Assembly: GCA_002269645.1 (NCBI GenBank)
Contig: NIVC01001427.1
Span: 62,001-126,000, forward strand
Length of the DNA: 64,000 nucleotides
Origin: Macrostomum lignano
Lineage: Eukaryota
Reading direction: 5' to 3'
A model generated the notes under the pieces. It was not told the DNA's origin, searched no databases, and saw nothing but the letters and a program-made list of their open reading frames with translations. The position numbers and the translations under genes were made by a program. Below, piece by piece: positions 641-24,325 of the stretch; within the stretch, counting starts at the first letter, position 1, and each line of letters starts with the position of its first letter.

Positions 641-3215
641 TTAGTACTCTCCTAGGCATTGCGTGTTCAGGTTTGCAAATAAAAAAGAAAATGGCACCGC
701 CATCATTGCGACTCCGAAGATGACGAACGCTTTGAAGAACACTCGATCAGCGGAAGATCCGACAGTCTTCCATTCGTTTTCGACAAAAGTGGCGTTGGAA
801 GTCTGTGATGCCGATACGTCGCCATCTGCATCGGCTGTGGTGCGTGTGACTGTCCGCTTAGAACTTTCTCCGACAACGAATCGGTTGAGGAAGAGTGCAC
901 GGACGACCCGACTGCTGACGCTGCTCTCTTGCCTGAAGTGACAGCTGAGAACGAACGCGTTGCAGAGCACATTTACAATTGTCATGACCACGGCCAAGCT
1001 GAAGTACCAGGCTGGAATGTGAGGCAAGTGTCAAATTCAGATAGACTGCTCACGCAATGGAAGCAATCGAGAGACTCACTGATAAACGGCACGGACTCGC
1101 TCTGCGTAGGCGTGTAGTTGCCAACCAGCTGCAGGAACACGCACATGGACAGCACGATGGTGATGCTGAAGGAGACTCGCTCGCCACACTCGGGAGGCAG
1201 GCAAAAGGCGAGCGCGGAGACTCCAAGGAGAAGAATGCAGGGCAGCATCAGGTTTATCATGTAGAAAGTCGGAAGTCGCTGTAATTACGAGCGTAGAATT
1301 CCTAATCTAGTATTTCATGTTTCTACGAGTAAAGCATGATTTCAAGAAATTGTACCAAGATCTGGACAACAACTCACTTGAAATCCGACCCGGAGCTCGG
1401 CTGTGTCGTACAGGCCAAACGATCCGTTTTCTAGCCGGGCCCACAGAATGCAGAACTCGCTGCTCTTGATGACGAGCACATCAGGCGCATCATTCTGGTA
1501 CAGGGACTTGATGCGGACTCGAGTCGATCCCGTGACTTGCTGCAGACTCGAGAGCCTGACGAGACAGTTTTGCTCATCGAACGGAAACAGCTGCATTTGC
1601 ATGCTGCACTTGGTGGACAGAATCATTCCTGTGCTCCACAGCACAATGCCTGAGGACATCACCGAAAGAATCGCGCGGCCCTCTGTAGCGTCCGAGATTT
1701 CCACCCTAGAGTGAATTGTTTAAATGAAGGCACTCATTGAGAGCAGTTTCAATTCGTCAGTCGTCAGAACGTCAGAACTTAATTTCTTCAGTACTTAGTC
1801 TCTGCAGTGCATGCATCAAGCAGGATATCTTTTTTAGTTTGATTGAGTAGCTTTTTATTTAATCCATTTGCTTGTAGAGCGTATGTCCGAGACACAAAAA
1901 TTTTGTTGCACTGGGATACCTGCAAAGGTTTTCCTAATTGGGTTATTTTATACCTAAGTTCGAAATTTTCCCTTTATCAGTTTGCGTTGCCTTAAGAAGT
2001 CCAAGGTTATGGCCTCTTCTTTCAATGCGTCGATCCAACGCTGAGCGGAAGAATTAAAATTAAACAGAATTAAATGGCGCTGAATGGAGTTGCAACCGCG
2101 AGCACGACAATAGCTCGAGTTTAACATTGAGCTGCTCCTTTTTCAGTTTAGTATTAATCAGTATAATAATAATAATAATGAATATATTATTACACAGTAT
2201 TAATATTGCTAATGCACTATGTTCGAACATATCGACTCCTATTTAATGAGAAGTTCTATTAAACTCTCAAAAAATAACGTCGATGTCCCTAAGCTACTGA
2301 ACTAAAAAGCTAAGCAACCCACGTCGGGTTTTTTCGCACAAGTGACGAAAAACAGCGGTCGCACTTCCGCAATCTAAAGTGGCCTATCTAGCGAATGTAT
2401 CATCTATTGTGGTCTGTAGTGTTGAAAGCAACCGGCATGTTCTCGATATCTTTTTTAGGTCCAAGCACTGAACCATATTCACTAATTCTCTTTTGTTAAA
2501 TTTCAAGTTTGAGCACGCGTAAAACAACTCACGCATCGTAAAAGGATGCGTCAGGTTGCCACAGGTACGAAGCCGGAAGGCTGATTGCGCTGATATTGTC
2601 CAGACTGGAGTTGAACTTTCCTTTCCAGGCCAGGCGACTGTCGGTCCAGTGCTGCAATTACAGCTCATTAAAAATTATCTCTGCAAGGATTGAAAGGAAT
2701 CTTTCTTGTATCAAAGGTATCTAAGACTTAAAGCTTACCACGTTAAGCCACACCATGAGCTTTATTTCCTGTTTTGTGGAGTCCTGAAAGAAGTGTCAGA
2801 AAGTGGGTCATCCATTTACCAAAAAAATCTGCCTATCAGGATTAATGAGTGATTCGAGTTCATTGAGCATCGAAATACGATTAGTAAACCTACAAGCAAG
2901 CGTACAAACCTTAGAGATTTAGTATATTAGATTATGCTGAAGCAGGAAACGGAAGAAACTCGAAAAGGGATGCACTAAAAAGCTTAGCATGACTCGTTTA
3001 ACACAACTGCTCACCACTTTAACGATGGAGTTCAGGTAGATGAAGACATTGAGGGTGTTGGCGAAGCCGCTGTCAGGTGGCGGTCGGATCGCTTTGTTAT
3101 ACTCGGTGAAGAGCTTCAGCGCTGCCGCGACGGCATCGTCAGGTGAGGCGGGCGATGCGGCCGCTGACACAGCAGCACCGAGCAAGGCCAGGCAGATGAG
3201 GAGTCGCGCCGACAT
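641..3215 (-). CDS. nAChR-like Cys-loop ligand-gated cation channel subunit, copy A (6 exons, 420 aa)
   Basis: Exons 3215-3015, 2783-2739, 2651-2533, 1705-1378, 1278-1080, 1011-641 with GT-AG junctions give 1263 nt in frame. Signal peptide MSARLLICLALLGAAVSA; WTDSRLAW; WQPDASFY; Cys-loop CSMQMQLFPFDEQNC (C-x13-C); M1 FYMINLMLPC; M2 GERVSFSITIVLSMCVF; M3; pre-M4 EWKTV..ADRVFF. Confidence 0.9.
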
Positions 3216-21724: not shown

Positions 21725-24325
21725 CTAATTTTGCTGCATTGCTTGTAGGCAGCGACTGCGCGGCTGCACAGCGTAGAACCCAAGTGACACCGCCGTCATA
21801 ATGACCGTGAACGCGTTGAAGGTCCAGAAAAACAGCCAGTCTGCCGCGTCAGCAACAATCGCCCATTCATTGGCTTGAAGACTTGTGCGGCTGGTGCCGT
21901 AAGGCGGATCCGAGTGCTGGCTTGAGGCGGTCTCACTGGCGACGGTATTGTTCGTTAGGTTCCTCTTGGCCACGAAGCGGTTGAGAAAAAGCAAGCGGAT
22001 GAGCCGGCTGCTCACCCGATCGCCGCTTTGCTGTTTGAAGTGGCAGCTGATCACGAACGCGTTGCAGAGCACATTTGAAATTGTCAGCAGCACCGTAGTC
22101 ATGAAGCAGACAGCTGAAATCATCATAAAAATTTTGAATGACATTAAGCCTATCTTGCCAGTTCACGGATTCTGCCCGAATATCTTAAAACTCATCAATT
22201 CTTAGGCCAGCTGAGTGAATTCCCTAACAATAAAGTTGTTTATAGATTTTTTGCACCGCAAGTGCATGAAGGTAATATTATTTTTCAAACACGCGTTTTA
22301 ATTGTTAATCCGATCTCAATCCAGATAGATATATAGGTAGATATGATAGATATATAGATAGATAGATAGATAGATAGATAGATAGATAGATAGATAGATA
22401 GATAGATAGATAGATAGATAGATAGATAGATAGATAGATAGATAGATAGATAGATAGATAGATAGATAGATAGATAGATAGATAGATAGATAGATAGATA
22501 GATAGATAGATAGATAGATAGATAGATAGATAGATAGATAGATAGATAGATAGATAGATAGATAGATAGATAGATAGATAGATAGATAGATAGATAGATA
22601 GATAGATAGATAGATAGATAGATAGATAGATAGATAGATAGATAGATAGATAGATAGATAGATAGATAGATAGATAGATAGATAGATAGATAGATAGATA
22701 GATAGATAGATAGATAGATAGATACATAGATAGATAGATATATAGATAGATAGATAGATAGATAGATAGATAGATTTGCGTTGTTGTCAAGGGATACCTA
22801 TCCAAAAGCTTGTGATTACACTACTTGCGCACAAATTTCTTAGCATTGCAAAGGACTCGTGTGTGTGGTAACTGAATTAATAGAGACGTGAACGAGCCCT
22901 TAGCAGTCATTAGCTAAAAAGTGTCGAATATCTGAATATTCTGAGCCCTCAGAACAAGAGTGTTATTCTCACTGATGAGCGGCACGGACGCGCTCTGCGT
23001 GGGCGTGTAGTTGCCAGCCAGCTGCAGGAACACGCACATGGACAGCACGATGGTAATGCTGAAGGAGACTCGCTCGCCGCACTCGGGCGGCATGCGGAAG
23101 GCGAGCGCGGAGATGGCGAGTAGGAGAAGGCAGGGCAGCATCAAGTTCACCACGTAGAAGGTCGAGGCTCGCTGAAATGGAGAAGCCAGTCATCATTTAA
23201 TATCCTTCTCTGATCCATCAGCAGTGTTTTTATAAAAAAAACTTGCTTTAAATTTTATCCGAATGGTTGGTGTGTCCAGTCCGGTTGGTTCACCTGACAC
23301 CATTTCCGCAGAAAGTACGCAAAATTCATTGTTTCCAATGAGGTAGTTATCTATGGCTGCGCCCTCCATCAGCGACTTAACTTGAACTCGAACAGTGTCT
23401 GGAGCCAGTTGGGGCAGGAGTGGCAGATGGCAGACCTGGGAGTCGAATGGAAAGTACCGCATGTCCATATCGCACTTGCTCACTAAGATCAGCGACTTGC
23501 CGATTTCAACGATCCCTGCGCTCGTCACTTGCGCTAAAAGCATGTTGATCGTCGTCTCCTTGACGCTGATGCTGAGGTTTAAAAAAACTTTACTTTATAA
23601 TTCTCCTGACAAAAAAGAACCCCGACCTGAACAAAGAGCTACTCACGCGTCGTAAAATGAAATGTCCGACAGCCAGAGCATACTTGCCGGCACACGGATC
23701 AAGGATACGTCATCGAACCTTGAGTTGAACGCACCGAGCCACTTGAGTCGCGAATCAGTCCAAAACTGGAATGGATTATAAAATCTTTTTTTCCCTGTTT
23801 TGTGCACCTTAGTGAGTAAATTTCATCGTATAAGTGAGCATTTAAAAAGCTTTTGAGGCTGATTTTGTTTGCTGAATCAAGCACCGTTGATACGTGTAGT
23901 TAGACCGAAAAAACTGACCTAATTAAAGAATAATTTAATTATTCTTCTCACCATAGTGAGCCAAACTTTCATCGTTATCTCCTGACTCGAAGAGTCCTGC
24001 AATGTTGCAAGCATCAAGTTAGATTGTAGACCCTGTTTTGGCGTATTTAGCGAGACAAATTTAAACTGTTAATGCGGTTTCTGACCACTTTGAGTAGATT
24101 GTTGATGAAGACAAACACATTGATAAGGTTGGCATTTCCGTTGTCTGGCGGTGGCCTGGCTGCACTTTTGTAGTCTGTCTCCAGCTTCAGAGCTGCCATT
24201 ATCGCCTGGTCTGGAGACGCGTCCTCGGCTACGACTGCGGCAACGACGAGAAAGAGACAGGCGGCCGCCGCTGATGTGACCCCCGCTCCGGGAGACTGGC
24301 TTCCTGGTTGCTTTCTGGCCAGCAT
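21725..24325 (-). CDS. nAChR-like Cys-loop subunit, copy F (6 exons, 438 aa; GC donor at intron 4)
   Basis: Exons 24325-24086, 23996-23952, 23765-23647, 23571-23247, 23171-22973, 22113-21725 (1317 nt). Cys-loop CDMDMRYFPFDSQVC; intron 4 starts GCAAGT at the position where paralogs have GT. Confidence 0.85.
22322..22775. repeat. (GATA)n microsatellite, about 450 bp, in intron 5 of copy F
   Basis: Over 100 near-perfect GATA units. Confidence 0.98.

Follow-up and report, generated by a model that had tools for sequence, protein, structure and literature searches.

A cluster of six Cys-loop receptor loci occupies positions 641 to 24325 of the 64,000-nucleotide stretch of the Macrostomum lignano genome analyzed here (hereafter the window; NCBI GenBank assembly GCA_002269645.1, contig NIVC01001427.1, positions 62,001 to 126,000 of the forward strand). 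The reading we favor, and consider fairly likely, is that this is an M. lignano-specific tandem and inverted cluster of compact genes for Cys-loop cation-channel subunits with a non-canonical ligand-binding pocket. The encoded subunits would assemble as pentamers that conduct cations and are opened not by acetylcholine (ACh) at the canonical alpha-type site but by one or more other ligands, which may differ between paralogues. The cluster itself evolves by local duplication (genes A and C), pseudogenization (copy B) and nucleotide homogenization confined to the M2 segment of the pore; ectodomains diverge by birth-and-death while the pore would be held constant through purifying selection and gene conversion. 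Orphan channel expansions of this kind are well documented in molluscs and annelids, and the M. lignano cluster adds one to them; by analogy, the channels might serve in sensing, among several other possible roles.

A motif scan of six reading frames across the full 64 kb located the six loci, designated A through F, in mixed orientation, with the array bounded by the stop codon of A at 641 and the ATG of F at 24325. At all six, an M1-M2 block with PPECGERVSF comes after the Cys-loop motif (C-x13-C, with FPFD, or FPVD in B). Neither the scan nor tblastn with the finished proteins detected a Cys-loop receptor locus past 24325 in the window. Gene models were assembled from three-frame translations and splice sites. 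By these models A, C, D and F are intact and encode proteins of 418-438 residues, E is probably intact, and B is a pseudogene. Common to every copy are the exon lengths (x/45/119/~328/199/x) and the intron phases (0,0,2,0,1), and all introns are of the GT-AG type bar one GC donor in intron 4 of F. The original prediction, made from this DNA by eye, had described six paralogs with identical intron positions and phases and a C-x13-C Cys-loop. The gene models bear out the shared intron structure, the Cys-loop is present in six of six copies, and all six loci are real; that B is dead and that E is frameshifted in this assembly had, however, gone unflagged.

Domain content, pore sequence and gating elements support the assignment of these loci as real, mostly intact, divergent genes for nicotinic acetylcholine receptor (nAChR)/5-HT3-type cation-channel subunits. 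The gene C protein matches the Pfam families Neur_chan_LBD (8.9e-32) and Neur_chan_memb (6.8e-22), and M1-M4 are visible in every intact copy, which places the proteins in the Cys-loop, or pentameric ligand-gated ion channel, superfamily. Each comprises a signal peptide, an ectodomain carrying the C-x13-C loop, M1-M4 and approximately 50-60 residues between M3 and M4. The best sequence matches among solved structures tie between mouse 5-HT3A at 5.9e-38 and nAChR alpha6/beta2/alpha4 at ~1e-37, and alpha7 follows at ~1e-31; for comparison, the alpha7-like M. lignano protein P0008 matches human alpha7 at 2.9e-94. The description of the genes as 'nAChR-like' in the original prediction therefore holds as far as the cationic Cys-loop type is concerned, but it is looser than stated given the tie between 5-HT3A and nAChR structures, and is better read as 'cationic nAChR/5-HT3-type'.

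Alignment of the family to P0008, lophotrochozoan nAChRs, human alpha6 and mouse 5-HT3A reveals a cation-type pore in which E/D -4', E -1', R0', S2', T6', L9', V13', Q16' and N20' are invariant in the family. The cation-selectivity motif ECGER and L9' are unchanged in all copies in the window and in the paralogues, and the elements associated with gating coupling are kept: the M2-M3 loop has SESVPLI, and both FPFD and the pre-M1 Arg are in place. Two features specific to the family are a three-residue insertion after the WxDxxLxW motif and a short M3-M4 region, so that the proteins measure 418-438 residues versus ~500. Two family-specific cysteines are also invariant in the intact copies, corresponding in gene C to C207 (11654-11656) and C414 (12467-12469). 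The first lies where beta9 begins, directly after an 'EF' found in place of the GEW motif, and the second follows M4 (xCLG); the two could pair in a disulfide joining the ectodomain to the C-terminal tail. An AlphaFold2 model of the paralogue P0002, computed from an 11-sequence alignment, has a mean pLDDT (predicted local distance difference test) of 52 with a poorly predicted ectodomain, and the Foldseek matches of this pLDDT-52 model in the PDB are cationic pentameric ligand-gated channels at template modeling (TM) scores of 0.4-0.55.

Closer examination of the pocket supports the view that these genes lack the determinants of the canonical ACh principal face. The vicinal Cys-Cys of loop C and Tyr188 are absent in every copy, where loop C carries a seven-residue deletion. 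The loop B Trp149 is likewise absent in every copy; its place, inside a two-residue insertion, is taken by L, R, I or Q (LSSLQQ in A and C, IYSRLQ in D, IATIFD in E, LLPQLA in F and IISRTS in B). Tyr93 of loop A is found only in A, C and F (FYD); D has N at this position (VNN) and E has L (FLE). Tyr195 is retained only in A and C. The loop D Trp, retained in all window copies, is the only pocket aromatic kept throughout. The alpha-type principal face, with its Cys-Cys, Tyr188/Tyr195, Trp149 and Tyr93, is thus not found in these proteins. The missing loop C Cys-Cys, the replaced loop B Trp, the uneven distribution of the loop A Tyr and, from these, the loss of the canonical ACh site had all been proposed beforehand, and each agrees with the alignment.

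The pocket is also unusually variable. Across the eight columns that could be aligned (loop D Q57; loop A Y93; loop E 109/117/119; loop B 148/149/151), mean pairwise identity among 10 members is 0.14, versus 0.36 for the ectodomain (173 columns) and 0.66 for M1-M3, and only 0.5% of random column sets of the same size are as variable (permutation p ~0.005). This hypervariability fits a family whose ligand recognition may have diversified.

The most distinctive detail of the cluster is a nucleotide homogenization confined to M2. The segment concerned is the last 124 nucleotides of exon 5, located in C at 11925-12048 on the plus strand, with counterparts on the plus strand in D (14423-14546) and E (20467-20590) and on the minus strand in A (1080-1203), B (about 6145-6274) and F (22973-23096). 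Across all six copies, pseudogene B included, it is 91-98% identical in nucleotide sequence, and a repeat finder recovers exon 5 as the sole DNA-level repeat common to all copies. Third-position identity is 0.93-0.95 in M2 versus 0.25-0.58 elsewhere, the conserved RPPPD and M3 segments included, and the G+C content at third codon positions in M2 is 0.83-0.93. At degenerate codons whose amino acid does not vary between C, D, E and F, these four genes use the same codon at 26 of 33 sites in M2 versus 19 of 96 elsewhere (Fisher p = 2e-9). The pattern points to gene conversion that is limited to the pore segment and bears a GC-biased signature, and that would act atop strong purifying selection.

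Outside this segment the old paralogues C, D, E and F are divergent. Their proteins are 27-42% identical in exon 4, 34-45% over exons 2-4 and 77-92% in exon 5; the 30-40% previously estimated by eye for the ligand-binding exons was about right. The proportion of synonymous differences in the same four genes is 0.7-0.9, and thus saturated, everywhere but in exon 5, where it is 0.16-0.40. Whole-gene ratios of nonsynonymous to synonymous divergence (dN/dS) are ~0.24-0.34, with dS saturated in all pairs but A-C. For that pair the ratio in exon 4 is 0.43, giving no sign of positive selection.

Several points weigh against a pore held uniform by gene conversion and a pocket given over to other ligands. 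Synonymous constraint on M2, exerted for example by a splicing or RNA element, is not fully separable from gene conversion, and dS saturation between the old paralogues prevents a test for positive selection. The hypervariability of the pocket columns would fit relaxed constraint on a disused pocket equally well, and, with the references only 25% identical, the alignment around loops B, C, E and F is uncertain. Furthermore, the Cys-Cys and the loop B Trp are likewise missing from muscle-type non-alpha nAChR subunits, which are nonetheless essential in ACh-gated channels. Because they share this loss, the absence of a principal face does not by itself exclude a role in cholinergic heteromers.

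The window genes might then encode non-alpha, or complementary, subunits that co-assemble with canonical M. lignano alpha-type nAChRs into ACh-gated heteromers, in the manner of vertebrate beta1, gamma, delta and epsilon. With the Cys-Cys and loop B Trp missing, all window copies nevertheless keep the loop D Trp of the complementary face together with a conserved cation pore and gating elements; a canonical alpha7-like subunit (P0008) is present in M. lignano; and the best Foldseek match of the poor P0002 model is a muscle nAChR non-alpha chain. We nonetheless judge such a role unlikely. The complementary-face positions (loop D Q57 and loop E 109/117/119) vary as much as those of the principal face, none of the 13 members of the clade described below carries alpha-type features, and the family shares only ~25% identity with canonical subunits encoded in the same genome. 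The unusually short intracellular loop and the family-specific cysteines also set these proteins apart, and an array of fast-diverging accessory subunits would be unusual.

The distribution of the family argues for a channel family private to this lineage. A HMMER profile of four M. lignano members (P0001-P0004), searched against 1.84 billion representative proteins, returned 13,677 matches at E <= 1e-3 and 622 at E <= 1e-30. Strong matches per copy are found only in M. lignano, namely P0012, P0013, P0001, P0004, P0014 and P0016 (BOX15_Mlig024351), with P0050 more distant. High scorers from Mactra, Owenia, Glandiceps, Tegillarca and Pinctada, and a 5-HT3A-like protein from flounder, were rejected as relatives because they are fused models of 600-1800 residues whose scores sum over 2-5 matched stretches. 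Among single-copy proteins from elsewhere, those closest to the family are ordinary 'alpha9/alpha10-like' or 'beta4-like' sequences of Lingula, Pecten and Glandiceps. In a BLAST comparison of gene C (179 proteins), family members are 34-51% identical, the M. lignano outlier P0050 29%, and proteins from outside Macrostomum at most 31%; among these 179 proteins the pore signature LSM[CS]VFLQ occurs in M. lignano sequences only.

In a neighbor-joining tree (301 columns, 200 bootstraps), 13 compact receptors of M. lignano, five window genes among them, are monophyletic with 100% bootstrap support. The five window genes cluster with P0003 at 87%, and the attachment of the clade to nAChR or 5-HT3 sequences receives 3-15%. 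Besides the window copies, at least eight further M. lignano paralogues exist, for about 14 or more recovered in all. The profile search of 1.84 billion representatives, BLAST and the tree yield no one-to-one orthologue of a conserved subunit, given the fully supported M. lignano clade and its unsupported attachment. The original prediction had envisaged an independent birth-and-death expansion and had named clean one-to-one orthology with a conserved non-alpha nAChR subunit as the observation that would speak against it. No such orthology was found, and the Macrostomum-restricted clade supports a lineage-specific birth-and-death expansion, independent of the cephalopod chemotactile receptors. 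The genes had so far been catalogued only: 33 'nAChR-like' gene IDs, including BOX15_Mlig024351g2, have been listed for M. lignano with no further analysis (McCusker et al. 2019, PMC6881066 S1 Table), and this gene-ID catalogue is all that our literature searches turned up on how the genes are expressed or function in Macrostomum.

Molluscs and annelids harbor large-scale orphan nAChR-like expansions whose binding residues are altered (PMC6896357, PMC10338036, PMC13174522), and these are the closest known parallel to the window family. Such lophotrochozoan orphans, which include bivalve and annelid families (Jiao et al. 2019, PMC6896357), Alpo4 of Alvinella (PMC10338036) and divergent molluscan clades (PMC13174522), are likewise cationic Cys-loop subunits encoded in tandem arrays, with the same high ectodomain divergence and agonist-residue substitutions, often without the loop C Cys-Cys; the same remoteness, roughly equidistant from nAChR and 5-HT3 receptors, holds explicitly for Alpo4. 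Their defining traits recur here in a species-restricted clade of at least 13 members, six copies in 24 kb and substitutions in the pocket. Surveys of the lophotrochozoan orphans left out flatworms, and the window clade is Macrostomum-restricted in the databases searched. Many of the expanded molluscan genes are intron-poor retrogenes, whereas the window genes have five conserved introns and include the ancestral 45-bp exon. Alpo4 retains the loop B Trp that the window genes lack. Features of the window family's own are the M3-M4 region of 50-60 residues, the loop C deletion, the two cysteines, Q16'/N20' and the nucleotide homogenization confined to M2.

Vertebrate nAChR and 5-HT3A genes share with the window family the Pfam domains, FPFD, the pre-M1 Arg, GE(K/R), L9', V13' and SxSVPLI, as well as exons of 45 bp and ~110-120 bp, at E-values that reach only about 1e-38 to 1e-30. 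In contrast to these receptors, the window family has lost the aromatic box, has a shortened loop C and a very short intracellular domain, and carries the two-residue insertion in loop B and the three-residue insertion after WxDxxLxW.

The cephalopod chemotactile receptors (CRT1, CRB1 and relatives) provide the precedent for a chemosensory function, in which the paralogues would act in peripheral sensory cells to detect chemicals from the environment, prey or mates. Like the window genes, they are cation-channel subunits of the nAChR superfamily that have lost ACh-binding residues and expanded in clusters with a variable pocket. They derive from nAChRs (PMC11526382), and the authors of the Alpo4 study raise the same idea for orphan lophotrochozoan receptors (PMC10338036). 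The window family likewise combines a lineage-specific clade, clustered copies with one pseudogene in six and a young pair, the loss of ACh determinants, and pocket columns that are significantly hypervariable while the pore is fixed. Nevertheless, the match in lost ACh residues and diversified pocket is one of analogy and not homology. Cephalopod chemotactile receptors, compared here by description, are described as intronless retrogenes in cephalopod clades (PMC13174522), whereas the window genes keep five introns and fall in a clade formed solely by M. lignano, and the resemblance would for this reason be convergent. No sequence kinship particular to the chemotactile receptors emerged, proteins from outside Macrostomum reaching about 31% identity at most, and they are also absent from the top 60 sequence matches in the PDB and from the top 50 Foldseek matches.

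On balance we regard this chemosensory function as rather improbable. The argument for it is by analogy alone: sensory expression and hydrophobic agonists have been demonstrated for the cephalopod receptors, to which the family is unrelated, whereas the window channels are known from genes alone. The family is modest: about 14 or more paralogues were recovered, in a species whose catalogue lists 33 nAChR-like genes. Moreover, the same signature is seen in orphan receptors without a known sensory role (PMC6896357; Alpo4, PMC10338036) and in bivalve expansions, for which roles in development, stress and immunity have been proposed (PMC6896357). A more elaborate version, in which an independent flatworm chemoreceptor family arose as the pocket was first dismantled and then diversified, with M2 conversion keeping one channel core beneath interchangeable sensor domains, would be less probable still.

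Among the individual copies, A and C are not independent old paralogues but a young inverted pair, with 85% amino-acid identity and dS of about 0.25. Their inverted-repeat arms, at 2980-3473 and 10406-10899, measure 494 nucleotides at 98% complementarity and in both genes reach from the 258 promoter-proximal bp through exon 1 into intron 1. The pair is a mosaic: identity is 97-99% in the 258 bp upstream, in the exons and in intron 5, and introns 1-4 are otherwise unalignable, a pattern that again suggests patchy conversion.

Gene A, intact on the minus strand at 641-3215, encodes 420 residues in six exons (3015-3215, 2739-2783, 2533-2651, 1378-1705, 1080-1278 and 641-1011), as supported by its open frame, GT-AG introns and alignment to C. 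Gene C, intact on the plus strand at 10664-12481, encodes 418 residues (exons 10664-10864, 11075-11119, 11199-11317, 11437-11764, 11850-12048 and 12117-12481). Gene D follows intact on the same strand at 13331-15283 with 427 residues (exons 13331-13534, 13612-13656, 13736-13854, 13935-14262, 14348-14546 and 14895-15283). Gene E, also on the plus strand at 19329-21037, encodes 422 residues once two 1-bp homopolymer deletions are bridged (exons 19329-19537, 19674-19718, 19803-19920, 20003-20324, 20392-20590 and 20664-21037). Gene F, intact on the minus strand at 21725-24325, encodes 438 residues (exons 24086-24325, 23952-23996, 23647-23765, 23247-23571, 22973-23171 and 21725-22113). The GC donor of F, which follows its fourth exon, lies at 23245-23246 on the minus strand (AAA|GCAAGT) where the other copies have GT, and an (AGAT)113 microsatellite (22323-22775) makes up most of intron 5 of the same gene.

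Pseudogene B, recognized on the minus strand at about 5413-7499 by three-frame reading and tblastn, follows the usual layout where its exons are recognizable (exon 4 at 6445-6772, exon 5 at 6145-6349). Exon 1 is interrupted by a CGA>TGA stop (7311-7313), exon 2 has 40 rather than 45 nucleotides, exon 3 contains a frameshift and a TAA stop (6925-6927), M2 carries a 6-bp insertion, and in exon 6 a TAA (5965-5967) is followed by an insertion of ~250 bp. Minisatellites with units of 38 and 30 nucleotides lie between pseudogene B and gene C (7753-8507). Between D and E, at 15767-17493 on the minus strand, are Cys-rich open reading frames (for example YLGCYTDY, WSC-like in look) without a Pfam match at E <= 0.01, which suggest an unrelated secreted-protein gene that breaks up the array.

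Gene E is open apart from two homopolymer sites, where this assembly carries 1-bp deletions in CCC at 19442-19444 (exon 1) and in TT at 19820-19821 (exon 3). Both sites are in frame in the M. lignano models P0001 and P0012 (KFPTEYN, TRLSWY). The frameshifts are probably assembly errors, or stem from another haplotype or homeologue. We consider a true pseudogene less likely than an error of assembly or a difference between alleles, since each of the lesions is a homopolymer shortened by 1 bp and two UniProt models are in frame at these sites.

With B dead, E frameshifted in this assembly, the M2 identity extending to the pseudogene and the pocket hypervariable, one could argue that the family is decaying and largely non-functional, its conservation reflecting recent duplication and gene conversion. 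We find this highly improbable, since four copies, for all their saturated synonymous divergence, keep open frames of 418-438 residues together with every splice site, dN/dS is ~0.25-0.3, 13 paralogues from several loci show no variation in the gating and pore motifs, and E is intact in other M. lignano models.

The nearest database proteins to the window genes are uncharacterized M. lignano entries. P0012 (UniProt A0A1I8JJA1; 1056 residues) fuses the 3' half of C with D and E through antisense sequence, and omits exons 2-3 and the C-terminal tail of D as well as exon 2 of E. Those stretches of D that it models are identical to the window gene. The C-terminal half of C is 99.5% identical to A0A1I8JJA1, the single difference falling at the junction of the fused model. 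P0001 is gene E joined at its 3' end to the antisense strand of F, and both P0001 and P0012 omit the 45-bp exon. P0013, P0014 and P0003 resemble similar fusions at other arrays, and the fused multi-copy models P0013 and P0003 indicate that further arrays are likely to exist. Public M. lignano models at this locus (window positions 11700-21037) are thus fused or chimeric, and re-annotation is needed.

Beyond the array, the window holds several unrelated features. Two tandem genes on the minus strand, at 26065-28918 and 31750-34403, combine ankyrin repeats (Ank_2 up to 1e-47) with a C-terminal caspase domain (Peptidase_C14, 1.4e-28 and 9.6e-25) bearing QACR active-site motifs, an unusual architecture that is present here in duplicate. 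A mariner-type transposase remnant lies at 44376-44858 on the minus strand (Transposase_1, a weak match at 6.8e-05, just below the Pfam cut-off). From 48000 to 64000 the composition shifts abruptly, from a GC content of ~0.37-0.45 to 0.50-0.59 with strong GC skew, and minisatellites are dense, among them a 22-nucleotide unit repeated 109 times at 56856-59255 and a 30-nucleotide unit repeated 23 times at 53664-54375. A RhoGEF (DH-domain) fragment is found near 63500-63650 on the plus strand.

This cluster puts free-living flatworms among the lophotrochozoans that possess private clades of orphan nAChR-like channels. It presents a compact case of modular channel evolution, in which the pocket is free to diverge while approximately 125 nucleotides of pore stay near-identical in all copies, the pseudogene included. 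Should the channels prove to be sensory, a Cys-loop neurotransmitter receptor would have been turned into a chemoreceptor independently for a second time, and M. lignano, as a transparent flatworm model amenable to transgenesis, makes expression studies and knock-outs of these genes feasible.

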